Assembly (NCBI RefSeq): GCF_000315625.1
Contig: NW_005434659.1
Location: 590,181 to 654,180, forward strand
Source: Guillardia theta CCMP2712
Taxonomy: Eukaryota > Protista > Cryptophyta
Direction of reading: 5' to 3'
Length of the DNA stretch: 64,000 nt
Made by a program: the position numbers and the translations under genes. A model generated the notes under the pieces. The model was not told the DNA's origin. It ran no database searches and saw nothing but the letters and a program-made list of their open reading frames with translations. Of this stretch, positions 24,959 to 43,674 are shown in pieces (position 1 is the stretch's first letter; each line of letters begins with the position of its first letter).

Positions 24959-25303
24959 CAATATTTTTCTTGTGTCTGGCTCGAACTGGATCCTTTCTAT
25001 GAAGAACAGGTTGAAGTATAACCAGACCCATGTGTGATTCAAGGCCGTTTCAGAAAATCTGGTCGTGCTGGTAGAGACATGTGCGACATCGGCACCTTAT
25101 CAATCGCCTTGTGTTTGTGGATGTAGTTATCCATCTTCAGGCGTGCGAACTTGTTTTGACAATTGTGTTCGAACAGGATCTCGCTTAGTCTCACCACGGT
25201 GTCGATGTATCTTTCATAGTGATCCAACCGAGACGTTTTTGCGCCTTGTCTCCATTTTTCTATCTTCGAGTATATCGATACTAGTTGGGTTTTTCTTGTC
25301 CAT
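24959..25303 (-). pseudogene. Degenerate Fanzor1/TnpB-like nuclease fragment (transposon remnant)
   Basis: One minus frame reads ..KWRQGAKTSRLDHYERYIDTVVRLSEILFEHNCQNKFARLKMDNYIHKHKAIDKV..KRP*ITHGSGYTSTCSS*KG.., resembling the Fanzor1 segment (KTSxLxxYxxYI..LF..RF/KxxxYIxKQKAxDK..VAxGxG..KG) that precedes RuvC-II. Two in-frame stops; no catalytic residue visible. Confidence 0.6.
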
Positions 25304-25527
25304 GTACTTACTCGATCATATCAGCACGTACTTACTCGATCATATCAGCATGTACTTACTCGATCATATCAGCATGTACTTACTCGATCAGATCAGCATG
25401 TACTTACTCGATCAGATCAGCATGTACTTACTCGATCAGATCAGCATGTACTTACTCGATCAGATCAGCATGTACTTACTCGATCAGATCAGCATGTACT
25501 TACTCGATCATATCAGCACGTACTTAT
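25301..25527 (+). repeat. Tandem minisatellite, 24-bp unit (CATGTACTTACTCGATCAGATCAG) x ~9.5
   Basis: Directly visible; abuts the 5' side of the Fanzor-like fragment. Confidence 0.97.
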
Positions 25528-26069
25528 TAGACTAGCCCGTGCTGTCAACTTTCACTGATTCCGACATGGGGTTTAGATCAAGGTGGTTTTGTTTTGTTCG
25601 TCTTCGAACCTCCGGCGGCTGCAGTCATATCAAGCGGCAGCTGAAGTGGGGGATGCGGTGGGGTGGTTGAGGGTTGATGTGGGGGTAGGGTAGGGTACGA
25701 GGGTGACAGGACACAGGGCAATCGAGGGAGGAGGGGCGACCCATCAGTCCGTAAGGACAATGGGAGGGGTGCTGCGCCTGGAGCCTAACTGCTCGGGGTG
25801 GGGGGTCATCGGTGAGCACCAGGGGGTAGGTGGGTAGTGATCATCGACTTGACATCGACATCTCAGAGGGGGAGAGGGGGGTAGGTAGTTACTGTAGGCC
25901 CGGGTGAAGGAGGCTTGGGGTATGGGAGAGGTGGTAGATCGAGGGGGTAGGTCTTTGTAAGTTTAAATTCAGCAGGGGTGCTCGGCCTGTAGGGTAGTCA
26001 GAGGTACGGGTAGTGTCAGAGTAGGGTTGTAGGCAGGAGGTGGGGTGGCTCCAAACCATCGCGAGGCGA

Positions 26070-28408
26070 ATGCTGGGCAAGCTTATGCAGCTGCAGTCAG
26101 ATTGTTGGGCGAGCATTTGCTCCTCCTCCCCCTCCTCCATTGAGCCGCATCCATGCAAGAGACTATCTCACGCACCTGGTTCCCTTGGCTTCCTCTTGCT
26201 CCATCCCTTCCTGATGCTCCGCCTCCCGATCACCTTTTGAACAGCACATTGTACCTCCAGATACTATGCTTTGAGAAAGGATCAAAAACTTCTCCTGACT
26301 TCTCTCTGCACTCTTCATATTCATGAATGACCTTCTACTTTGTTTTGCAAAGATCATGTCGAACTGGGCCGCTGGAATGATTTTCTCGGATTATGCTCCT
26401 GCTCCATCGAAAGCTACATCGGAGGCAAGATCACTGACACGTCTTAAAGTGATGTAATCTTTAAAGAAGATGGCTAATGGAGCAAGTAGCGACAGCTCAA
26501 GACAGAAACAAGTTGCCGGACTTCAGGCAATTCCTTGCATGCAGGTTTGCGTTGGCTAACGATGAGAAGGCGGAAGCGTCAGGATGGTACGAGGATATCA
26601 CAAACCCTGTTGTGTCTCAGTATAAGAACGAAGTGAGAACTGAGAATGATCCGTCTCCCCTTAATCTTGCTCTCTTCACAGGCTATCTCCCTGAATGTTG
26701 GAAACGGACTCGCACAAGCAAGTGCTGCCCACCCTGCGTCACGTCTGGTGTCTGAGAAACAGGTTGTCACCTGGAACATAGGCTATTTTCGTCTGTCTCA
26801 CAGTGATCTTGCGGAACCAGATCATGTCTCAGGAATCGGCAAATCGCGGGCGGGAGAAGCTTTCTGTGCCCGCGGTGACGGTGAGCGTCTCCCAAGCTGC
26901 TGGGGTCGTGGGATCACTTCATGTCAGGATCAACTCGAATTGTTGAGGACCTCCAATGAGGATCTGACTCCATCTCAACTTATGGAGGCAGCTAACGCAT
27001 GGGCTAAACGTAGCTGAATCTAGATTCCCATCTTCCCTTGCTTGATTTTGCTTCCAGGGAACAATTTCTCTCCTGAACAACTGCAAGAGTTTGGCCATCT
27101 GATTACCATGGTCGCAGCAACGTACATTCCTCGGTCACAAATCAAGAAATTTCGACAATTAGACCAGGTGAAGACAGCCCATGCTCTGTCACTCTTGTTG
27201 AAAGGCTGCAGGGTTCTTTTGGATTGATCTACAGCGCGGAGTATGACGGCTCCACAGTAGCTGTCAAGCAATGCTCCTCGGTAGACTGCTTGGCTATGTA
27301 CTTGACTATTTGATGAACGAGACCAGGACGGATCTCAAATCAAAGCAAAGATGCGTGAGTTGCTGTTGGAGTTGAGTGTGCTCGTGAGAATCCGGCACCC
27401 AAACATCGTGACCTTCTGGGGAACCGCTGCCGAATTCCCGTTGACCTCGTAAGTTGCGATGCGTCACTGATTGAGGGTACTGCTCTGACCCTTGTCAGGG
27501 GATCCAAGCCCTACATGGGGATGGTGTTTGAGCTGTGCGTTCAGGAGGATGTCTATCTCTATGTGAGACTTTCTACAGATGTCACAAGGGAAGTTTGTAC
27601 AAGGCATTGCATCAACACGGTGGGAAAAAACTCCCGTTCAAAGAGAAGATGAGTAATATGTTCCCTGATCCCTCTCGCAATCTCTGACGATATTTGTGTT
27701 GAAAGGATTTGCTTTGGAAGTCTCTCGTGGAATGAGCTACGTGCACGCAAAGGGAATCATTCATAGGGACCTCAACAGCAGAAATGTCTTGATAACAGAT
27801 CAAATGCATGCAAAAGTCGCAGATTTCGGATGCGCGGTGTGTTCGTTGCCTCTGCTTGCTTGATGTGACTTGCTGTGTAGCGGAAGCTGAAAGGATCAGC
27901 TCTGCACACGACAACGATTTCAGGCAGCCCTGCTTACATGGTCATGACTTGGATGCGAGTGGAGGTGGCATGACAAAAGTGACAGGCACCGGAGCAGCTA
28001 GAGGGACACGACTTGACCGACAGGATAGACGTGTGGGCCTTCGGAGTTCTGATGTGGGAGATAGTAACAGACCAAGTTCCGTGGGCGTCCAAGGGGAACA
28101 GTCTGGATGCGCTGAAACGCTGCATATGTGTACAGGTAGGATGATACACGACCTGCAGCCCCATGACAAGTCCGAGCAGGGGGACAGACTGCCGTTGCCT
28201 GCGGCAGATAGATTTCCAAGCGGATGGAGATCGCAGTATGTGAAGATGATGGAGATGACGTGGAATAGCAACCCTCACGCACGGCCTAGCATGGTGACAA
28301 GTCTACATGCACGCTCTCCTCCTCACGTTTCTGCTTCAGGCCGACATGAGCAAGGGCTTAGAGGCGCTCATAAATCAAGAGCCGATGTCGGTGGGTGAGT
28401 TCATGTAG
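26070..28408 (+). CDS. Tyrosine-kinase-like (TKL/Raf-type) protein kinase
   Basis: Spliced GSFGLIYSAEYDGSTVAVK, ELSVLVRIRHPNIVTFWG, IIHRDLNSRNVL, KVADFG, GSPAYM-APE, DVWAFGVLMWE, HARPSM. The N-terminal half is uncharacterised and the start is uncertain. Confidence 0.88.
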
Positions 28409-28732: not shown

Positions 28733-31700
28733 TCATTCTGGGTTTTCTCGATGGTCAGCAAGTGGGATCGTGAAGATCTTGCCGCGGGTAGCCTTGTAGT
28801 TGTCGGAGTAGAGGTGAGAGTGAAGGATGGAGTCGGTCATGGGCCCGTAAGAGCCTCGCACGCAAGGAGGACAAGTCTTGCCAGCCGCTGCCTGCGGTGA
28901 GCCCGGGGCACAAGGGTTTCCAGAATATCCTGACTTACAGACGCATTGCCACGAGGACACACACCCGATGTTTCCTCCGGTTCCCGTGCAGCCGAAGGTC
29001 TCCGAGTTAGGAGGGCACGTGCTCGCACAGCTCGCGCTCCCCCACGAGGATTTCCAGGAGTTGGAGGGGCAAATAGTGCAGGGGCCTCCGTCAGGCCCCG
29101 TGTATCCAGGTTTACACCGGCAGTCGAGGATGCTCGTCCTCGCCTTGAGCAGCATCGTCCCTGACCCTGCTGGGCACTTGCCGGTCAAGTTTGAAAGACT
29201 GCCGGGAGCGATCTTGAAGGAGTCCTCAGCTACCGCCAGGCAGGGACCTCCGTTGGGACCGGCATAACCAGCCTGGCAGACGCACTCGAGGCGGCTGCGA
29301 GCTCCGACTGCCCCGAGAGTCTTGGAGTTGAGCGGGCAGGGGCTGCATGCTTCGCCTCCGAGCTGATCCTGGTAAGTGTCGGGGGGACACGAGCGGCAGG
29401 GCCCGCCTCTTGGCCCATAGAAGCCAAACTGACAGGAACAGTTGGCGAGGTTGACATCTTGCCAACCTCCTGCCTTGATCGGGCAGACAGTCACATTCAA
29501 AGACTTGGTCTGCATGTTGACTATGGAACAGTCGACGCCGCTGAAGGAAGGCTCGCAGTGACATTCCGCATCGATGCATCTTCCTCTCGCACTGCAGTCG
29601 TTGACACACGTTGAGTCCTGGAAGGTCCATGAGAGGATCTCGTGGACTTGACTGACGGAGCCTGTGGAGGCGGTGAAACCTACCCAGGCATGTCCTGACG
29701 TCAAACTCAGCACCTCGTCAATGTTGAAGGGGAACGAAAGTATCGGGCGGTCGAGGTCGTCCATCCATATCTGCATGTTGCCGGGTCGTCGTTTCAAGAC
29801 CTGTATGGCCCTCGGACTTGCAAAGTAGCTGGGGTCTTGCACAACCTCAGGACGGATCCAAACCTCGTACCGAATCCTCATGGTGTGAACGTTTCCGTCG
29901 GCAAGGTTGGGCAAGGCTGAGGTGTGAGCGATGCGAGACCTCAGGCTCGGCTCGTTCTGTTCTGTTCCCATGGTGTGAACCGCCAGGTGATTGAGGTACA
30001 CATCTCCCAGGTTAGCGTTGTACCACGTGTCTAACTCGAAGGCAATGGAGTTGTCTATCCCCCCATACCCGAGGTTGCTTCCGTTACCTCCGAGAGCAAA
30101 CGGAGTGCCATTGTCATGTACGACAAAAGCCAGTCCGTCCCCTCCTCGATTGATACATCTTCCTGCGTTCTGAGCCGACACTGAGCAGTTCCGGACTGGA
30201 TCTGTGATGCGGAAAGAGAACTGAGTTTCAAACCCCAGGCTAACTCGCTGAGGCACGTTGAACCACACGGCCCCTACGGAGTTGAAAGCATTCCTGCACA
30301 ACCGGAGCGAGCTGACACAGCCCGTCCGACCTTCCCAGCAGACCAGGGGACCCTGAAGGCTTTGGAAATAGGAGGAGCCCACAAGGTTGAATCCGAATGT
30401 GGTGTTGAAGAAGGGAAAGTCAAAGCCCTTGCCTACCGTTATCCTGAAGGGACTCCCAGGAAGGTCGTCATCAAGCATGCTCACTGACATGAGATAAGTC
30501 CCACTGACTGTGATGTTGTAAGCCACGAAGTAAGTTCCGTCCAGTCGATCGAAGACCATCGTTGAGTTCTCCCCAGATCCAAAGTTGGTGCTTTGGATGA
30601 ACACCTCTACTTTTTCTCGCCCACTGGAACGCTGATTTCCAAACTTATCTCTGGCAATCACAGTGAATGTAGATGGATATCCAATGACTGCAGAATGCAG
30701 GCCTGAGCCCACAACCGTACTCTTGAAAACCTCGGTGAGTCCTCCGGCTATGGAAAGGGAGAATGGACTGCCTTTGATATGCTGAGTTGTTCCATTTGCA
30801 TAGATGAACACCAAGGAAAACTGGTACGTTCCTGCTCGTGTGATGTTGTATGACCCAGAGTACATGTTGTTTGCGTCTACATACAGCTTGAAATTCTGAT
30901 ATGTTGACGGCTGTGCACCTGGAATGATGACCGTGTAAAATGGTACCAGATTTGGGAAGAGGTTTCGATAGTTGCCCCACGTATACATAGCTCCATCAGG
31001 ACCCTTCCAAATCGCCTCGTTGATTCTTCCCCACTCATCATACTGCCCGCAAGGTCCTAGTCGCGAGGTTTTGCACGAGGCTTGTTTGTTGTATTCAGCA
31101 GGATCGGAAAAAGGACTTACGGGAACACAGTCGTGCAACAAGCCTCCGCGAGCGTTATACGCCACCTGGTTAGAGAAAGCTGGATACTGGAGCGCCTCTA
31201 CTGGTCCATTCACAACAGACCCGGATGCTGGCTGGCTGTTCGCCCAGCTCGTCCAGATGGTCTGGCATTGAGTGCCTGCTGTGCAGCCGTCGCTTGGAAA
31301 GATCTGCTTCCACTTTGTCAGCACGCCGCTTCCTCCGTTGTTGACGTTGGGGTTCCAAGCGTGACAGTAGGGGCCCTCATCGCCCTGCAAGACTCGTCGG
31401 TTGCCCCATCGGTCTCTCGTCTCCACGGAGAAGGTGCACACTAGACCAGCTCCACAAGAAACGAGCCCGTTGCCGAAGGCTGTGCTAGCTCCGATGTCAA
31501 CTACATCTGGGCGCACAACAATCATGTAGGGACTCTTGTCCAAGTCGACATAGAATCCTGCTGCGGTCAACAAGCGAACATTGAAGGGATAGGTACCAGA
31601 CGTCGTCAGCTTGTAGTCGACAGTGTAATGAGCGTCGCCATAGTCGTGGAAGGAGTAAGATTGAAAGTTGACCTGCCAAAGCTGCTCCAACTCTTCGAGC

Positions 31701-34700
31701 TTGAGAGTGTCGAAGTATCTTATTCTCATAGGGTCAAACTGAATGAAAAACGATGATTCAAGTGCAGACTTCCAGAGGTAGTTGAAGTACGAATCTCTTA
31801 AGAAAATATCAAAATAGACAAACTTGCCAGAAACGATTGCGCCTTTGTAATCTGAGGATAATGTGTAAACATTCTTGTCTTCCGAAACGCCTGTCCCATT
31901 CACAATTGACGTCTTTGCATCAAACAATCCAGGCTCGACCTTGAATGGAATGGGATCACTACTCAGAAGTAAGCCAAGGTAGCTGATTGCAAGGTTGTAC
32001 AGCCCTGCCCTCGTGATTTTATAGGAGATGAACCATGTTCCATTGTCATAGTTCTTGTACTGTAAGTCACAAACCATGTTGGACACCGTAGAAATCTCAG
32101 GCGCTGGAGAAATCGACGTAGAAGACTCACTCCAGCGTCTGTTGCATTGACTGAGTCAAATCTATTGCACAAACAAATAGCATCTTTACCTTCCTTTGGT
32201 GGTCAAATACTCGGAGACGAATCCTTCCACGTTTTGTCTATTCCCAGTTGCAGAATCGTAGGCAACAAAGTAAGGATTTCCTATGGAGTTGACAGCTTGT
32301 GTGTAATACAGTTGACTTACGTTGTGGCTTGAAATCCATGATTGGATTTCAGCATCGGACATAATCCCCATCCATGACGGCCTGGCTGGATCAAGGTTCG
32401 CAATTTCCAGTCCGTAATATCCGTTCCCGAGGACATCGGGAGGCATGATCATGTTAGCCTCTAGTCCTATCCTCTCCAAGGGCGGACAGAACCTCACTCC
32501 ATTGGGATTGATGACTCCATCCAAGAATGTCTGCAAGGCATTACTCACCGGGCTACTGACGTGCTGCTGTGCTGCTTTCATGTTGACCTGACACTGATTG
32601 GGAGAGGCGCATTGCCTGACGGGACACGCGCTTTCATTTGCAGCCCTTCCATGCCAAGGTGGCGGCGTGTACGAAGAACAGCCTGTTGAGCTTCCATTTG
32701 GACAACAACCTGGCGAACATGGAACTTTGTTCTTGAGATAATTGCAAATGAGCTGAGGTGATAGATTTGGTGAAAGGACTGCACCTGGCATGTTCTGTTC
32801 AGTTGGCTTGTTGCATGGGCTCATATCCGCTTCAAAGAGAGATGGGCACTTGCAAGAAATATCTGTCAGCACTTGATCTTGCACCAACGGACAATCTGCG
32901 ACCGAAACCCCAGAGAGATGCACTTGGAAATCTACTTGATTCGATTTGACTTGATTCAATCTTGTGTCCCGCGCGAAAATCAGGAAACTATTAGGCTTCC
33001 CTGCGGTCCCGACAGCTTGACCATGAGTTTCTACTGTTGAATTAGGAGCGTAAGCTGGACCAGGGGCGACGTAAGTGATGAAAGGCGAGAATTGAATGTC
33101 ATTGCACAGAGGGTTGCAGAGTAGAATCGAAATCTTATGAACTCCAGCAATCAGAGGATCCCATTCAACTAGATAGTCGCCCATCCAATTGTCGTCTCCA
33201 GAGAATTGGAACTTTGCTGAATTCGGTGAAGTTCCATTCCTTGAGGCCGTCTGGGCGATCAAAGGTTCTTCAAAGGTGATTCGCAGTTGTTCCTTCTGCG
33301 TCGCCCAGTTTCCGTAGATGTCCTGAATGCGGACAGAAAAAAACGCTCGATATCCTGCGATAGCTGTTCGCAAACCAGTGCCAAACGCTTGAATTAGATC
33401 AGATCTGGTTGGACCTGAATCAACCCACACGCTTGCAGTATGATGTCACAAATCAGTGCAAATTCAATTCACATCTGTACCTGAAGGGACTTCGAGGAAA
33501 GTTCGGAGACAAGCCATCAGGATTAGAAGGGGAATATGATACACAAGAAGAGTTTTCTGGAGGGCACCATGCGATTCCAATGCTGGAATCGAAGTAGTCG
33601 GTCCTTGCTACCCCAACGTTGCAGTATTTCTGTCCCCCAAAAAGAGCGCTGAGAATCCAAATCAGGCAAACTCGACTAACGACTTGATCCTTACCTGCCG
33701 CTCTGCAGACGGATCTCTTGTGAGCCAGGGCACCCAAGGCCAGTATCTTTCATTGCCACGTAGAGCGAATATCTACCGGACAGAGTGACCGCATACTCAG
33801 CCACATACGAACCGTTTCCATCATTCATCACGTTTGCAAAGAAATAAGCATCCGTGGAGGTGTGAACCAAAGCAACGATGTATTGATCTCCACCCGCTAG
33901 ACGAGGATTGTTGTAAGCGTCATAGGAGTCTATGTAGAAATGAGTGGGAATTCCTGCCCTTGTCGTTGATGTGTATGCAAGTCCAGGGCCGTGGGCTATG
34001 CTGTGTCCAGGAGAGGTTCGATCTGGAATGATGATAGCTGTTCTTGTATTGTACCCCTTGGGAAATGGAATCGCTGTCATATACGTGTCTACCCCTTCAC
34101 GCAGTTGCAGGTTAAAGAAGTTGATTTCGTAGAATCCAGGTATAGTTGGTTTGAAGTATAATATACACTTCTCCTGTCCGAGAGGGCAAGGAGGATTACT
34201 AGCAGTTGTGCAACGATAGAAATTGGCATCGAACTTCTGTCGTAGTGCGTAAGAATTTTTCTCATCCCAGGTGCGAATGTCATTCCCAGGAGGATAAGGA
34301 TATCCGTATTGTTGACCAGTGACTGCCGATGGTGGAGTTGTCACCCATGGTCCAACAAGTTTGCTTGCTAAAGATGTATTTCTTGCAACAATCTGGGCTG
34401 CTAGGATTGGGCCAGGATATCCTAATTGATCCTGATAAAGCTTATTGAAGGAGTTCTCAAGTCTGTAAGTATCACATGTTTGATCGCATCTGGACCACCA
34501 TTCTGGGCTTCCTCCATTACTTCCTAGAATGTATCCTCGTTGATATGCTTGGCCCTCGCTCGGAACATCAGTTTTGACCTGAGGAGCTCCCGGTCCGACA
34601 ATGTATTCAGGCGCTCCGTACTGAAACGATTCATTCAAAGGCATGAAGCCTCGGGGACAATCCGATACAATCTTGACTGTACTCCCAGCTGTGTATTGCA

Positions 34701-36203
34701 AATACATGGTATCTAACACTTGCGAACAAGGATAGTATCCTTGAGAGATATTGTAGGTACTTGTGTTTGAAGACTGGAAGGAGCTGAAGCACATGTTCTC
34801 CTCAACCCCATCATTGGTGGCAGAATCCTTTTTCTGATCAAAAGTTACCCCACAGTTCGTGCAGATACTGTCCAGACATTCCGATTTTGGCACAGGAGGG
34901 CGATAAAACCTCTCACAACCAGGTGATAAAAGGGGGTATTGTAGTGTCTGCAAGAATACTTGATCCATAATTCCATAGATTACTTTGAAGCCTAGGTAAG
35001 GCATTCCAAGAGGTAAATTGCGGTCATCTGTTTGAAAGTTCACTGCTGTACCTGTGTCTGAAGCTGATACAATAGATTGCGGCATCGCGTAAACAGATTG
35101 TGGAAATGTGCCACCTACTCCAAATGCGGCTATCTTGTCATTGAGCGATACATAAGGTGAAGTGTAAAGGGAAATCTCGTCGAAGCCTTGCTCCAAGTTG
35201 AAGAAGATGAAGACGAAGACCATTGGTAACCCATACATCTGGTTGCTCTCTGGTATCACCGTCCAGGTGCAGTTTAGGTTATTGCCGTATGTCCTATCTT
35301 TACCATATCCATCGGAGAAGGACCCAAAGCTCTTGTGTATGTTCCTCACCCCAGTGCATGGAACGTCAGGATCGGAACAATTGAATCCTGACCACCCATG
35401 ATCACAATGACAGAAGCCTACCGAAAAATCGCAGATCCCATGACCATTGCATAGTTGAGAATACTTCAAGTCTGCGTTTTGATTCACAGTCTCGGAAAAT
35501 TTTGTGTAGTCTGCATAGCCACAGATTCCAAGGTCTGCTCCGTTGACATCATAGCAGAGTGCTTCACCCAAACTCCCATCCAAGAGATTTTGAGGTCGTC
35601 CTTGGTAAAACTTGATCAAATCATCTACATTACTGCCATCTGTCGGATAATACGAGCTTCCCCATCTTGATGCTCTGAATTGGGACGTATCGCTATCACT
35701 GAATTCTCTCACTAGTTTTTCGATGTCAGATATGGTTAACACTACCTGGAATCATATTCTTAAATGCATTTTGAAATATAACACCGTACCTGGCTTCCAA
35801 AGGGGTCATACAGAATCAATCTTGATAGTCCTATTCTCATCTCCTTCCATTCAAGTTTTTGATTCTTAATACTTCCGTCGATACCATCCCAAGAGTTGAA
35901 AGTTGTTTGAATACCTTGTTTCCAAATTTGTGCTTGCACCATCCTGAAGATGGTTCTGGATGGCACATCGTATCCAGAACAAATTATTCCTTTGGGCGGG
36001 AGTGGGAACCGTGAGTACCCAGCAACATAGGAGGGATTGGGATTGTACTGTTCGAAGGCGGGTAAGGGGTAGCTGTATGGCTGTGCCGTCACGAGTGGAG
36101 CGAGTAAAAATACGAGAGAGGTACAGATTAAAGTGCTTAGCTCATCCCTGCTGCACCTTCCCTTCCTCCTCCTCCTCTGCCTGCCCCGCCCCTCACCCTT
36201 CAT
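28733..36203 (-). CDS. Giant secreted mosaic protein (~2,400 aa): EGF, CUB, multiple filamin/Ig repeats, legume-type L-lectin, EGF, ephrin-receptor-like (GCC) Cys repeats
   Basis: ORFs 35760..36203, 33691..35742, 32186..33430 and 28733..32086 are joined by short introns (e.g. 35789-35746, in frame). Signal ..LVFLLAPLVTA-QP. EGF CNGHGICDF..CHCDHGWSGFNCS; CUB YGNNLNCTW; filamin GxGL..F.V..RDxFGNxR; lectin GGDGLAFVVH/SIAFELDTW/AWVGFTASTG; GCC GPxGGPCxxCPxxxYK repeats. No C-terminal TM. Confidence 0.88.
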
Positions 36204-36445
36204 ATCGCATCGCCCGCATTGAGTAACGACTGCAACAGACCATCATATCCTTTTGGTAGGAGGGGTAGTGGTGGACATAAATGGGTGGTATTAGAAGCAG
36301 AAGGGGTAGTTTTGAGGAGACTGAGGGGGTGAAGCTTTGAGGGTACTGGTGAATAGGGGGGGTGATTGTGTAACCAGGGCAAGGGAGTGGGAACTTGATC
36401 TCGGTTGCGAACATGTAGGGGGAACCAAGTAGACTGATAGGCAGC

Positions 36446-39400
36446 ATGAGGCTGCGAGCACAGAGGAGGTCTGAACAAGGCAGACAGCAAGACAAGTTCT
36501 CTACTGGTACACCAATCCTTTCCTGCTGCCCTCTCTCAACGTCGCTTGACATTCCCTTCAGGTCTTGTTGACCTTGTTACAGACAGAGTGAAAAACCAGT
36601 TGTTCGGTGTTCTCACCATTGTACTATTTCCTGTGATTCTTCTCAATGTTTTAGTTGATGTCTACACTAGCAGGTGCTTAGAACTTTATCTCTCTGCGCG
36701 TTGTCTAACTCGTCTATGCTTGTTTTTAGTGTTTTGATTGGCTGGAGCGATCACGTGGTGACAGGCCTGTCTCTCATGCAAGCACCAGATAGCATGATTA
36801 TGGGGGAATCAAGCAGTCAACCACTTATTTTCCTTGCAACAAACACATATTCTCTGCCCGTTTCTGGTATATATCTTTCTGAAGAGAGAGTGATTGTATT
36901 CATGTCATGTTGACTCAGGTAGTGTAATCACTGTCCAGATCCTCAAGTTTTATCCCGAGCCTCAGTATCACTTCTGTGGAAGTCTGAACACAAACAGCTT
37001 TGCAGCTGAGAGACTTGCTGGAGTGTGCAATCCTTCATTAGCTGGCAATGTTATCATATCAAATATCTCCGGATATGCAAATTTCGACCAACTCACATTT
37101 GTAGGAGGTTTGTATTGAAATGTCACGAATATTAGAATCTGAATCATACTGCAGGTGTGCCTGGAACATTTGTATTGAACGTTTCGTCGTATTACGAACA
37201 GAACCAGACCGATTACCTAGGAAATCAAGTGACTGTTTCCATAGTGTCCACGTCTGTCACTGTGCCCATCAAGGTCTTGAAGAACACCAATGTCACATTG
37301 TCGTCGTTGCAGAGTGCTCCAGATGTGGTGGAATATGGATATGCGTTCAATGGTTACTACCGTATGTGTTCAGGTGTTGCCGGGCAAAGCACTGATTGCA
37401 CCTCGACCTTTCAAGATGAATATTTGCCACCTCGAGTGAGGTTGGATTATAAAGGAAATCAATTGCTATCAAACAACACGATGGTCACTCTCTTTCTCGT
37501 TACCAACTTCAGCGAAATTGATATGCAGCACGTCAAATTTCCCATGACAAAGAATCCCCATGGTGTCGGATCTGTGGAGAAAATGGCGAGATTGAGTTGG
37601 GGTGTTGGTGCTGAATTTGTCATTTCCACGATGATTTCCAGCTCCAACGTTGTAAGTTTTGATGATTTCGTCGTCCAGGGCTCCAACAATCCAAGCCTCT
37701 TCTTTGCTTTCTACAGCTGTGGTGTCTTTGAACTTTGGAATTTCAAGATGTGGATCGATGGCGTCTGGGCGGTACGGGAAATGCTCTTGATCCCTCCGTT
37801 GGATGCTCGTGGACTTCGGCCAGGGGACGGCGAGAGGTGGGTTGGAGGCATCGCACCTTCGAGTGTGGGATCCGATGGAGTCGCTTCTGGGGATCAGTCG
37901 TACCTACCTCAACTTGAGATCTCTGACTTTCCCAAGCAAGTCACGGAAGGTGAAGTCTTCACCGTCACGGTCAACGTCATCGCATACTTGTACCCACGAT
38001 CGTTGGGCAAGTACAGCCTCGTGAACGGAGTCATTCTTTTTGCTGTGGCTGTGCCAACCATGGCAGTCCCGGCCACCTCAAAAGAATCCTTCCTGTCGAA
38101 AATCAAGTACCTTGAAAATGGAGTTAGCAGTCCAAGCAATAAGAATGGAGCTATCTTTCAAAATCTTGCTTTCAGTCTGGATGGACTTGAGGGTACATAT
38201 CGGATTCGAATATATGCTCAAGGCCAATATTATATTGAGACTGGGGATATTGTTGTGAGCTCGGTTGTAAACACAATCTTGTTCAAACTTCCTTCAACCT
38301 TCACTGGTCAGGTTGATGGTTGTTCACCCCCACTCAACTTAAGTTCGAATCAGGAATTCTGTATCTCAGCAGAATCTTACGAGAAGGTGTCGACCTTACC
38401 GTATTTGTTGGCCTACCAGTGTAAGAAAATATTTTCTCTCTCGCAAAGCTGTGAAATCACTCCAAGACAATCGATCTCGGTAATTCTAGAAAATCAGTCG
38501 GTACCATTCGAATATGCAGACAATGGCACCATTCGTTGGACAAATCTTCATGCATCCAGAATAACCTTGAATGATGTGCAATACAATCTCATTCCTGATA
38601 AAGCAAGGTATGAGTTCACTGATATCAGAATAATGAGCTTGTTTCGTAGCCAAATGAACATCATTTTCCGTATAGGTCAAGTTGAAGCCAATCAAAAAAT
38701 CTCTCTAATTGTGAACACTTCAAGACTTGACACTGCTGTAAAATTCTGCAACTATGATCCAGTAGGATACATCTCTGTTATTTCGTCGTCAGCAGACCCT
38801 CTTGCTACCGTATCCTACCCGGGCGGTCTTATGAAGGTCACGATATTCGCCGCTACAACCACAGGACAGCCAGCACGAAATCGTTTCTTCTGTCTTCGAT
38901 TCTTTGAGCTAGATTGGCATGATCCCTTTGCAGATCATGTCAGAGATCAAGACAACTATCGAATATTTCAGTCAGAAAAGAATTTCAACCCCTTTGCAAC
39001 CCTTTCAAACCTCACTTTTCACAACTCATCTTGTTTTCCTACAGATCAGACTGGCACTGGGAGTTTAGACTTTTATTTTGATACTCCTGAGCTCAAGTTT
39101 CGTTCAGGTTCTTATGCTTGGTACGTGGAGTCAGCTGAAAATGAAAGTGGGCAAATCTATCAAAGGTTTGGAAATATTTTTTATCAGAAGTATCAATGGA
39201 CAAGCAGAAGCGAAAGTCTCAAGTGCATCTATGAGAAATTCGGTGTTGAGATACCTCTTGCCCGGACCAACTCATACTATGTGTACTTGCGCAATGGATG
39301 GAAATCTCCTCCCACAGAGGTGCTTGCAACTTCCAGGTGGCCTCAGCCGAACCCTCCGGACGGGTCCTCATTCTTCCCGCTACGAAGTAGTTATTATGGT

Positions 39401-42400
39401 GCACTTGAGGCTAGGATAGCGAGTGTCGAAACGCCGTACGAATTCTGGGTCAGAATTTATGATGGAAACGCGATCTCTGACGTGTTGCTGTTTCCGTCAG
39501 GAGTGTCTGTGACTATGTATATGGTATCGGCTCCCAAAAGCTTTCCTGCAACGTTCCAAGCTTGTTCCCAGTACATCACGAATAACTGCTACTCTCTCAC
39601 TGACTTCGATTTTACTTTGACGTCTGTAACGGATTCGTTCGGTTATGCACGTTTTCAAATCTCGTCAAGTATCAAATATCAAGGGATCTTCAGGTTTGTG
39701 CTTACCATCGGCTCTATCGGTCAATCAGGCAGCAACTTCTTCTCTCAGGTCTTTGAGATTGTCTTCACCTCCTCCCTCAAGGAAGCCTTTGATTGCACCT
39801 CCGCTCAGTCGCTGCTGTCTTCCGCTCAGAGATTAGCTCCTGCTGTCAAGTATTACAACGCATGCCCCTTCCGAAATCCTGATGCATCCTGTAAATGGAA
39901 TTTTACTGTTTGTGACTTCGGGTATCCGAACATGGTTTGGAGATCAAGCAAAGCTCTGCCTCTATGTCTGCCGCTAGCAAAGAACATCCGACATCCACTC
40001 ACAGTCTACCTTGTCAACGATCACAACGAGAGCGTGTATGATCAAAATTTGGTTGTACTGGGAGCTGGGACCAGTATGCCTCAAGTGCATCTTGCTCAAA
40101 TGATTCAAAGCGATTCCAATGGTTTGGCGGTACTGGACAACTTCACTGTTGACTTCGCTTTGAAAGGGCCGATTTCGTTGACGGTGCAGCTCCCTCCGTT
40201 TCAATCATCTTATCAAAATATTCCGCTCTCACAACAAGTTCTCACCTCTGGATTGTCAGCTATTGATGATGAAGTTCACGCTGATTTCCTGACGCCCCCA
40301 CCTTCTGTTGTGATAATCGGGAGAACCATCGGCCCTGCTCTCCAAGTCAGGATCAAGGTCAAGAGCAAGTGTCTCTCATATCCAGGCGAGCTGGGAATCG
40401 GGTGGGTCCCTCCCAAGCTTGAGGTACGATTTGTTTCATCCTATGAAGCCAACGGCTCGGTGCTGCTGCTTGTGAACCAGTCGGTTTCAATCGCGTCAAA
40501 CTCCACCGATCCAGTGGTGGAACCTCTGAGAGGAGCAGCGGTCGCGACATTTGCCAACATGTCAGTTCAATCAGGACTACCTGGTAGATTCAAGTTTCAA
40601 GTTGTCATCCATTCTAGCAAACAGGTTCTGTTGACAAGTCAACTGGTGAGTCTGTTGACCACCGCCAACGCTCTCAGAATTCTTGATCACTTCCCGTCAG
40701 TCATCAGCCCGCACCTTTCTTTGCAACTCAGAGTTCAGGTGAACTCCTTGTCAGGGACGCCCTTGGCGAACGCTTTCGTTTACGCTGAGGTGATTCCATA
40801 CAGCAATGAGAACCAGCAATCTCCAGCTTCGAGTCTCAACACCTCCAACGTGTCTGCTCTTCTTGATCTCAACTCTTCTTTATCTGTATCAGATACAGAT
40901 GGAACATGTCATTTTCTCCTAACATTTCAATCATACACTCCTGGGCGTTTTGTCCTAGCTTTCAGCAGCCAAGGGGTTGAAAAGATATTTTCTTCGCCAT
41001 TCAGTTTTCAATCACCGATAGCTGAGATGAAGTTCTTGTCAAAACCTGTCATCTCTTCAGTCTTCCCTGAAGTCTGGGTGTGGCCTCAGATCAAATCGAA
41101 TCGCATTCATGTAGGGTTCAACACTCACGCAAGAGCCGGTCCGATCTTCAATCTCCCGTCTAGCATGAAGGATGTGGTCAAAGGTAAGCGCCTGAGCGGG
41201 TTGACCAAACTTCTTACTTGGATACTGCAGGTTCTCTTCCTTCAGATCCGGGGCCTGTGATCCAAGTCCTAGACCGATGGAACAAAGGCATCATCGGTCT
41301 TGTTTTCAACGTCACCTTGGTCGACGCAAGCAATAACATTCTTCAAGTGGTGGAATCTGCGGTGGAGAGACAAACCTTGTTCCAGGACCTTGGCCTTCAA
41401 ACTCCTCAAGCTACATGCAGCTTTAACAACCAACAAGCCGCCTGTGCGGGGCTGTACGCATTTCCAGGGCTGGGTTTGAGCTCAACAGTGACGACAGGCT
41501 TCTACCGATTCCGATTCGATAGCGAGGGTATCCAACTCGTACAAGAGGACGAATTGTTCTTCGTGAACAAGGCCATGACGGACACGACCGAAGTTGATGC
41601 ATACATGTTGGGGACCATGCTAACGGGACTGATGTGCATCATCTTGTTTGAGATGAACAAGATGGATAACTTGATCGTAAACCAAAACACGTTCAAATAT
41701 GTGCAGAGTCAGAAGTTCAAGAAGCTTTGGATGGTAGTTGCAACAGGCTTAATGATGTTCTTGTTCTACGTCATTGTCACCTTCTACACCATGTTGAGTG
41801 AGAATAAGACTCCTCCGCATAAAGCAAACGGCATACTGAATGGTTCGGATTACATCTCAATGTATGGCTCGTTCGTTATCATGGTCGCAGTCTCCGCGTC
41901 TTGTGTATATTCCTTGTATTTTATGTTCCAGAACCGCCAAAGCTTTTCTATCAAGAACAATGACCTCTTCGTTCGAAAACTGTGCGCACCTGTTGAAATC
42001 GAACAAGCTCGAAGATTTTTCATAGGAAGCGTGAGAAATTTGATCGTCGCCAAGGATCGAGTGTCTTCTTCGCATGGTTTCTTTGCCAAGCTTTACGATC
42101 GATACAGATATCGACTGGGAAGGATCAAAAGGCTCGTCAGTGCGCTTTGGGAATGGCTCAAGAAGGTAAGAGGCTTTGCCAAGGCCACGTACAGGAGGGT
42201 CAAGTACAGTATCCCCTTGTTCAACAGCTTGTATTTCGGGTGGTTCGACATGACGATCGGGCAGAGGGTGCTGGGGGCGATCTGGCTGAGCGTGTTTGTC
42301 GTGCTCTCGTTCCTGGGCTTCGGCCTCTGGTTCTCGCACAAGCTCGACACGTGGCTGAGCGGCTTCTACGGGGAGTACGTCAGCACCCTGGTGGCCCTCG

Positions 42401-43674
42401 GATACGTCCCCACCGACTGGTTCACCACCAAGTGGCCGGACCAGCAGAACCTGTCGACGCTACGTCAGGTGATGATCATCTACTACGGGCGGTGAGGCTC
42501 TCTTGCTCTGCCGCTTTAGCTGACTCCTCACCCTCTCGTCTAGAACGTCAACGCAGGGGCAGCCTTTCTTCCAGCGGCTCTCTGACTCCGCTGCGATCGC
42601 TACCTGGCTCGCAACGGTCTTCTCGACGATCGCGGTGCTGGTTGGGGTTCTAGATATCTACAGATGCTCGAGGGCTTACCTGCGAGCTGCACGGCTTAAC
42701 GCCTTCCCGGCTCCGAAGAAGAAGATTCGAGCGACAGCTGCCAGCTCATACATCGGGTCGCAAGCTGTGCTCGCGCTGTTCGGCTGGTTCTTTTCCTTCT
42801 TGTTCTGGTTCACCGTCATCTTCGCTCTCTCCTGGGTGAGTCCATTCCTCGAGGCGCCAGGCGCTGAGCCCAGCGGTCGCAGGCCCCCATCAGCAAGTAC
42901 CTCACTCCCGCATGGCTGCCCTTCTTCATCCTCAGCTGCGTCTTCCTCCTCCTCTACCTCATCTTTGTGCGTATCCGCATGTTCAGGAATCCAGGTGCTG
43001 CCGTGGTAGCTGTCAGGCCGACGCTCACTCACTTGCCTAGGGATAATCATCGAGAGCCGGTCACAGTTCGCTTTCTCCGAGACGATCTTGCTTCTTCTCA
43101 ACCTCGCCATTGGCTCTGTCTTGTCTGTTCCACGGTTTTTGTTCAGCACCGTGGGGACGATCTACTCCTGGTTTCTGCTGCATCGAGGAGTCGGGCAGAA
43201 CAGCCTGCTCAAGCTTGGAAGTGAAGAGTTTGAGGTGGGTTGACGACCAAGGGAAGGAGCTACAACCAGGGAGCTGATGTTACTTTCAGGCTGCCGTCTA
43301 CGTCCATCACGTGCATAACAACGCCTTGCTGCGCTGCATAGTAGAAAGACTCCATGTCGAGGTCAGCCTTGGCGACTTCCCTCCGTCAGCTCCACCTCAC
43401 ACGTTCGCAGCTACGAAATCGCCGGACTATCCTGCAGATTCCTTCCAACAACATCGAGCCGGAGCCTCTCAAGAGGCAGTGGGTGGAGCTACAGGTGTGA
43501 TCCATCCGGTTTCACATCAAAACCTCAGCTTGCTTCCAACAGGCGAAGAGGAGGAGGCAGCGAGCGCTCGTCAAGCTCCTCGTCATGGTTCAAGCCATTG
43601 CACATGCCGATCAGATTGACTTGACACGCTCGCGGAAGCACAAGATGGATGCGATGAGTCATCCGCAGCATTGA
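36446..43674 (+). CDS. Giant STRA6-like multipass membrane protein with ~1,500-aa beta-rich ectodomain
   Basis: N-terminal anchor, then 1367-aa ORF rich in beta-strand/Ig-like segments and NxS/T sites. TM exons follow, with STRA6-like signatures AASSYIGSQAVLALFGW, QFAFSETILLLLNLAIG..PRF, YxAAVYVHHVHNNALL and a basic C-terminal helix KRRRQRALVKLLV. Family assignment is by motif memory. Confidence 0.7.

Follow-up and report, generated by a model that had tools for sequence, protein, structure and literature searches.

A 64,000-nucleotide stretch of the genome of the cryptophyte Guillardia theta CCMP2712 (contig NW_005434659.1, positions 590,181 to 654,180 of the forward strand; henceforth the window, to whose first letter coordinates refer) carries two very large genes arranged head-to-head: a minus-strand gene at 28733-36203, whose four long open frames add up to ~2,360 amino acids (aa), and a plus-strand gene at 36446-43674, whose exons are collinear with the Rhodomonas protein P0006. 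Both are real, spliced genes of a cryptophyte nuclear contig, and both encode proteins of the cell surface. We consider it fairly likely that they are independent neighbours that happen to lie divergently in a compact cryptophyte genome, with the minus-strand gene specifying an adhesin mosaic and the plus-strand gene a giant membrane protein related to STRA6. Judged from its sequence, the latter protein is a new and rare architectural variant of the STRA6 superfamily. A preliminary description of this region, made from the DNA letters, had reported giant head-to-head genes starting ~240 bp apart, multi-kb exons, a wealth of N-glycosylation sequons (N-x-S/T), a secreted partner devoid of transmembrane (TM) segments and a multipass protein with a huge ectodomain; all of these features were recovered in our analysis. 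The ATG codons at 36203 (minus strand) and 36446 (plus strand) are separated by 242 bp, a distance that can be fixed because the ATG at 36446 matches the N-termini of the related proteins P0004 and P0006.

Exons 1 and 2 of the plus-strand gene (36446..36660, +) are split into segments at 36446-36507 and ~36556-36660 by an intron at ~36508-36555; starting from the ATG, they encode a short basic N-terminus (MRLRAQRR...; MRLRAQRRSEQGRQQDKFSTG), predicted to be cytosolic, the conserved motif LVDLVTDRVK and a first TM helix, which would serve as a signal anchor. Two small exons within 36743..37112 (+; borders approximate) hold the start of the ectodomain, the bulk of which is specified by a giant exon of ~4.05 kb (~37151..41185, +), the largest of the gene. 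The last ectodomain module is encoded by the exon at 41239..42492 (+) together with TM1-3, a cytosolic loop of ~110 aa, TM4 and an outside loop. With the next exon (42544..42835, +; GQPFF motif, TM5, a cytosolic loop, an AASSYIGSQ motif and TM6) begins the part of the protein that is homologous to proteins positive for the Pfam family PF14752. TM7, which ends in RNPG, and TM8/9 follow in the exons at 42883-42994 and 43041-43236 (+), and the last two exons (43290-43499 and 43541-43674, +) contribute a conserved cytosolic helix of the pattern YVHHxHNNxxxRxxVERLH, a basic amphipathic helix (KRRRQRALVKLLVMVQ) and the stop codon at 43672-43674. Reading of the exon junctions yielded canonical GT-AG introns throughout this gene model; in a tblastn comparison P0006 was collinear with the window from 36540 to 43376, with all exons in order, and the 42492/42544 splice was confirmed by the Hanusia transcript protein P0002, which spans that intron. 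Orthologues expressed as transcripts are present in Hanusia phi (P0002, 79% identity; P0003, 72% identity, the value found for the ectodomain of the giant exon) and in Rhodomonas (P0006).

The G. theta gene was analysed exon by exon, with the full-length Rhodomonas protein P0006 (locus L005) as a proxy for the whole protein; P0006 comprises 2,417 aa, stems from a 7.7-kb Logan contig and clusters with Rhodomonas salina proteins. Its hydropathy profile reveals a basic N-terminus, a TM helix at residues 77-95, ~1,600 residues without hydrophobic segments, and then eight to nine hydrophobic helices within residues 1697-2178, the third of which is followed by a ~125-residue loop. The conserved tail that comes next (YVHHQHNNPIVRALVERIHVELRN) leads into a basic helix (KRRTVAKLLVMLQMR), after which the sequence turns acidic and is poorly conserved. 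If the N-terminus lies inside, the ectodomain would be located outside, the multipass block would start outside and the tail would be cytosolic. This topology is derived from hydropathy, and helices that are odd in number and end inside would agree with the N-out/C-in layout of STRA6.

The ectodomain matches no Pfam family in the G. theta exons, in P0004 or in P0006. It is 34-38% identical to P0004, whose own ectodomain yields a weak Big_1 match (E 0.05), and searches of the ESM Atlas provided sub-0.9 leads to Big_1, invasin and SMCHD1 Ig-like clusters, with no lead for the TM domain. Given these weak leads, the ectodomain, in which a G-x-A-x-F...G-x-Y-x-L motif recurs, is probably built of Ig-like beta-sandwich modules. 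Sequons are plentiful in the giant exon (22 in 1,367 aa), as compared with only 14 in the 2,417 aa of the Rhodomonas orthologue. Elsewhere in the G. theta genome, a segment at C81:203002-203487 (L011), inside a 503-aa open frame, weakly matches residues 58-218 of P0004 (28% identity, E 9e-7), which comprise its anchor and first ectodomain module, and may represent a distant paralogue of the ectodomain start.

The relationship to STRA6 emerges through other cryptophyte proteins. Our scans of the G. theta genome covered 87,145,349 bases on 669 contigs and located PF14752 at C13:797148-797588 (open reading frame [ORF] L001:1378-3039:-; 29.9 bits) and, more weakly, at C20:148556-148741 (L002). A word search retrieved three relatives only (P0056, P0057 and P0058), and these proteins together with the products of the C13 and C20 genes appear to form a small branch of the STRA6 family in protists. 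BLASTP with composition adjustment aligned P0012, a member of the plus-strand family, with the PF14752-positive C13 ORF over 233 aa with few gaps (E 2e-6). When the alignment of the plus-strand family (A4) was compared by hhalign with that of the C13 ORF and P0056-58 (A5), the two profiles were joined over 218 columns with a probability of 97.1% (E 6.2e-11); all four members of A5 pass PF14752 (best E 1.6e-12). In the merged alignment (A6), the motifs GxxFF, LR, DAxxYxGxQ, WxPxxR, GxYIxxR and YLxxxxNxP occur in a shared order, and the register holds from the GxPFF that precedes TM5 as far as the Y-L/V-x-x-x-x-N-x-P helix and even the basic tail helix. Collectively, these data support the C-terminal TM half and tail as a divergent STRA6-superfamily module, at the level of remote, transitive homology only. 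The label STRA6-like given in the preliminary description hence stands in this restricted sense; the membership in PF14752 that it would imply does not, as no match was obtained. The remaining parts of the protein (anchor, ectodomain, first TM half and cytosolic loop) are, in our reading, either family-specific additions or too diverged to be recognised.

The receptor STRA6 works as a dimer to which calmodulin is bound; it accepts retinol delivered by a secreted carrier and discharges it into the membrane (PMC5954442). The homology to STRA6 (PF14752; zebrafish STRA6-calmodulin complex, 5SY1) that is traced via the cryptophyte proteins concerns the C-terminal TM half and the cytosolic helices, and the weak structural and profile matches of the plus-strand family fall on STRA6 residues ~271-562. 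The N-out/C-in multipass topology of STRA6 may also apply to the plus-strand protein, for which hydropathy suggests it, and the helical, basic tail of the plus-strand protein may be likened to the calmodulin-binding helices of STRA6. In contrast, the extra N-terminal TM anchor and the ectodomain of ~1,600 aa are set against a mere short extracellular N-terminus in STRA6, and no counterpart in STRA6 could be detected for the first four TM helices or the ~110-aa cytosolic loop. For animal STRA6 the ligand is RBP/retinol. With the cryptophyte STRA6-like proteins (the product of the C13:797148-797588 gene and P0056-P0058) it shares the TM5-TM9 and tail motifs at ~19-22% identity; however, these proteins pass PF14752 directly, which the plus-strand protein does not. 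Since their predicted lengths range from 342 to 657 aa, they leave no room for an ectodomain of the size found in the plus-strand protein.

The family defined by the plus-strand protein is, on the sequences retrieved, very small, and its named members are all cryptophytes. A word search with the TM exon returned only Hanusia and one near-identical Logan sequence, and a search with the ectodomain returned Hanusia and P0004, a 1,380-aa protein of 34% identity. A hidden Markov model (HMM) search among 1.84 billion representatives recovered 14 proteins at E<=0.001; this count refers to the first half of the family and is silent on relatives of the C-terminal half, as the profile of 412 positions ended at an exon border and was limited to TM1-4 and the ectodomain module preceding them. 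Rhodomonas and Hanusia were the only organism names carried by proteins of those clusters, the rest being metagenome, European Nucleotide Archive (ENA) or Logan contigs. The same two-part architecture is present on the loci L003, L006, L012 and L013, which represent three or more further uncultured lineages, and on L014; a metagenome scan contributed no more than two short loci. G. theta itself has a single copy of the gene. We found no description of such proteins in the literature on STRA6 and on G. theta surface mosaics, a body of work that did not include the G. theta genome paper. Because the named members are all cryptophytes, the family may relate to a surface biology specific to these organisms.

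If STRA6 is taken as a guide, the ectodomain may bind an extracellular partner, for example a carrier protein, a surface matrix or a second cell, while the STRA6-type membrane domain, probably as a dimer with a lipid-facing cleft, would hand a small hydrophobic compound on to the membrane or signal inward. The basic amphipathic helices of the tail are candidate calmodulin sites, as in STRA6, and the ligand-binding part, which for STRA6 is a separate soluble protein, might here be built into the receptor. To our knowledge, STRA6 has been described almost exclusively as the vitamin A receptor of animals. If our interpretation is correct, there is a protist STRA6 branch in which an anchor and a huge extracellular region have been joined to the conserved module of membrane domain and tail; the STRA6 fold would then be an old eukaryotic receptor or transfer module with other uses, and a natural receptor with a built-in ligand-binding arm would be available for comparison with STRA6.

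A protein of these dimensions might also be mainly structural. The membrane of cryptophytes is lined on its two faces by a proteinaceous periplast, and the giant protein could anchor the plasma membrane to this periplast, with its STRA6-derived domain serving only as a base embedded in the membrane and not in transport. The very large ectodomain with its many sequons and its weak Ig-like, Big_1 and invasin-type leads would suit such a role, as would a single-copy gene whose named relatives come from cryptophytes only and whose others come from environmental contigs. However, conservation between lineages is strongest in the TM block and in the motifs of the cytosolic tail; the HNNP helix of Rhodomonas, for instance, is 64% identical to that of the homologue on L006. 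The membrane domain is therefore argued to do more than anchor, and we regard a purely structural function as unlikely.

Several observations weigh against a STRA6-related receptor and against its independence from the neighbouring gene. With a limit of E<=10, PF14752 matched neither the exons of G. theta nor P0002, P0006 and its C-terminal part, P0012 or the ORF of L012, and the own-genome scan matched only the contigs C13 and C20. Sequence and profile searches of the Protein Data Bank (PDB) yielded no significant STRA6 match, with gp41, Fab and tropomyosin appearing by chance; when 177,635 PDB sequences were searched with the A6 profile, STRA6 (5SY1) ranked third over chain residues 423-562, with a non-significant E of 5.6. 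Foldseek, which the preliminary description had proposed as a check against STRA6, gave no match to it from either of the two AlphaFold2 (AF2) models of the TM domain. The first model (whole 611-aa TM domain, nine alignment rows) reached a predicted local distance difference test (pLDDT) score of only 50, and its Foldseek matches were meaningless; the second (C-terminal 391 aa, 14 rows including the STRA6-like proteins; pLDDT 67.5) retrieved only long-helix matches of the BAR-domain type and no STRA6. Alignment of this second model with 5sy1_B by VIA-align gave a Z of 7.7, a value inside the noise band of helical bundles. The weak superposition in question (model residues 25-209 on 5sy1_B residues 271-439; 158 residues, rmsd 5.1, rank 22 of 48,161) follows a register that we judge compatible with the sequence mapping, and the profile match to 5SY1, a second weak and independent signal, falls in a compatible register too. 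Moreover, no relatives outside the family could be detected for the first TM half or for the ectodomain, so that the homology is carried by only ~220 residues. Function, ligand, dimerisation and calmodulin binding are all assigned by analogy with STRA6, and the lack of coupling between the two genes, discussed below, is argued from a lack of synteny in a distant relative (34-38% identity).

Read at face value, the missing direct Pfam match and the missing significant PDB sequence or fold match would suit a lineage-specific multipass protein that is unrelated to STRA6 and resembles it through the hydrophobic composition of its TM segments. Such a composition effect is nevertheless hard to reconcile with the BLASTP result for P0012, where composition had been adjusted for, or with the hhalign controls. 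Reversal of A5 and 20 shuffles within 25-column blocks, which keep hydrophobic segments in place, gave a best score of 26.8 as compared with 91.2 for the real alignments. The ordered motifs shared in A6 include polar residues of the loops and of the tail. We therefore hold an origin unrelated to STRA6 to be decidedly unlikely, and retain a remote STRA6 relationship of the C-terminal half as our interpretation of the plus-strand protein.

The minus-strand gene has a different make-up. Its first open frame (35760..36203, -) starts with the ATG at 36203 and a basic N-terminus, followed by a hydrophobic stretch at residues 22-40 (LSTLICTSLVFLLAPLVTA), the only hydrophobic segment of the gene, which fits a signal peptide. 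In the other three open frames no hydrophobic segment exceeded the threshold, and hence no TM segment is predicted. Twenty-six sequons are spread across the four frames. The second frame (683 aa; 33691..35742, -) carries an EGF domain at residues 96-123, a Cys-rich region and a filamin repeat at residues 576-667, and the third (414 aa; 32186..33430, -) two filamin-repeat stretches detected by Pfam. Four further filamin stretches, a lectin domain (~593-825) and an EGF domain (827-855) are present in the last open frame (1,117 aa; 28733..32086, -), whose Cys repeats of the ephrin-receptor-like/GCC type (~885-1090) precede the stop at 28733.

The Pfam matches behind this assignment are above their cut-offs, apart from PF18483. 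Filamin (PF00630) scored 95.2, 34.1 and 33.6 bits in three open frames (cut-off 26.9), corresponding to at least six stretches; the legume lectin family PF00139 reached 48.5 bits at residues 608-825 (cut-off 26.3), and PF07699 (Ephrin_rec_like, GCC2/GCC3-type) 39 bits in two stretches (cut-off 23.1). EGF_Teneurin and EGF_2 exceeded their cut-offs in two open frames, and an Ig_GEX2_N match that overlaps a filamin repeat also lay above its own. The lectin family PF18483, with 70.5 bits, remained under its own cut-off of 78.3. Thus, among the domains named in the preliminary description, EGF, filamin, L-lectin and GCC were borne out by Pfam, and CUB was not, as none of the four frames gave a CUB family even at E<=5; we have dropped this label for the Cys-rich region of the 683-aa frame, which is left without a Pfam match. 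Downstream, protein-kinase exons on the opposite strand at 27696-28144 (+; IIHRDLNSRNVL, DFG, DVWAFGVLMWE) run towards the 3' end of the mosaic gene. With these exons lying past 28733, the minus-strand gene stops at this position and lacks a membrane anchor. From its domains, we conclude that the predicted product is a secreted, N-glycosylated mosaic adhesin or lectin and an ordinary member of a large G. theta mosaic family.

Across the G. theta genome, the domains of the minus-strand gene are listed at 59 places, giant open frames among them, and the closest paralogue (C1:1122452-1124502) is 39-44% identical to it. None of the listed places is on C13 or C20, the contigs of the PF14752-positive genes. 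Dozens of giant open frames in this genome contain ephrin-receptor-like or filamin repeats, with stop-free lengths of up to 11,314 and 10,500 aa; giant mosaic frames are found at C2:928026, C40:507624, C277:21655, C138:34349, C299:35828 and C61:305216-312940. When compared with the mosaics MST1 of Chlamydomonas and GEX2 of plants, the minus-strand gene shares the filamin, L-lectin, EGF and GCC2/GCC3 types of Pfam domain. However, GEX2 is membrane-anchored whereas the minus-strand product lacks a TM segment, and the gene is one of many G. theta paralogues.

The spacer between the two start codons (36204..36445) is a candidate for a shared promoter. The preliminary description had gone further and proposed a co-regulated two-component surface apparatus; on this model, both genes would be expressed from a bidirectional promoter and the secreted mosaic, as a hair, adhesin or recognition factor, would dock on the STRA6-like protein. 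In Chlamydomonas, the mastigoneme protein MST1 is situated on the channel PKD2, which provides a model for such an arrangement. The divergent start codons 242 bp apart would be in keeping with it, both predicted products are extracellular with many N-glycosylation sequons, and STRA6 has a secreted protein as its natural partner (PMC5954442). Yet the genomic evidence speaks against such a coupling. L006, a 24-kb metagenome contig of the Joint Genome Institute (JGI), carries a homologue of the plus-strand gene (34-38% identity) with 10 kb of upstream DNA, and here the divergent neighbour, a multi-exon gene at L006:5650-9777 (-) that starts ~224 bp from the homologue, is an unrelated gene. It has no Pfam matches, thus no filamin, lectin or EGF domains, and its G. 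theta counterparts are located at C16:383196-384293 (the orthologue) and C84:403273-403824. Because a spacer of similar length on L006 belongs to a different gene, short divergent spacers look commonplace in these genomes.

Conserved synteny in relatives had been suggested as a check by the preliminary description, and tblastn with the four minus-strand open frames against eight related loci (L003, L004, L006, L012, L013, L014, L027 and L028) found nothing at E<0.01. The upstream flanks compared measured 10 kb on L006, ~2 kb on L028, 1.6 kb on L014 and ~1 kb on L027; the pairing is absent from the distant relatives with an upstream flank (L006, L028 and L014), which leaves the proposed apparatus unsupported. 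The 59 mosaic places and the L006 neighbour argue that the mosaic is not a special partner of the plus-strand gene. Added to this are a closer paralogue of the mosaic on C1, the lack of any listed mosaic on the contigs of the other STRA6-like genes, and a locus at which nothing involves a PKD-type channel. A two-component apparatus hence appears improbable to us. That the STRA6-derived giant docks or takes up the neighbouring lectin mosaic or another carrier, as a co-regulated module for the capture of hydrophobic cargo that was assembled recently in the Guillardia lineage, seems highly improbable; if true, the built-in 1,600-aa ectodomain on a STRA6-type pore would capture hydrophobic cargo such as retinoid for the large rhodopsin set of cryptophytes. 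We thus return to two independent neighbours, a secreted mosaic and a STRA6-related giant, as the reading of this locus.

Apart from these genes, the window contains a tandem repeat at 25065-25535 in which ISMYLLDQ/ISTYLLDH units follow each other in one frame.

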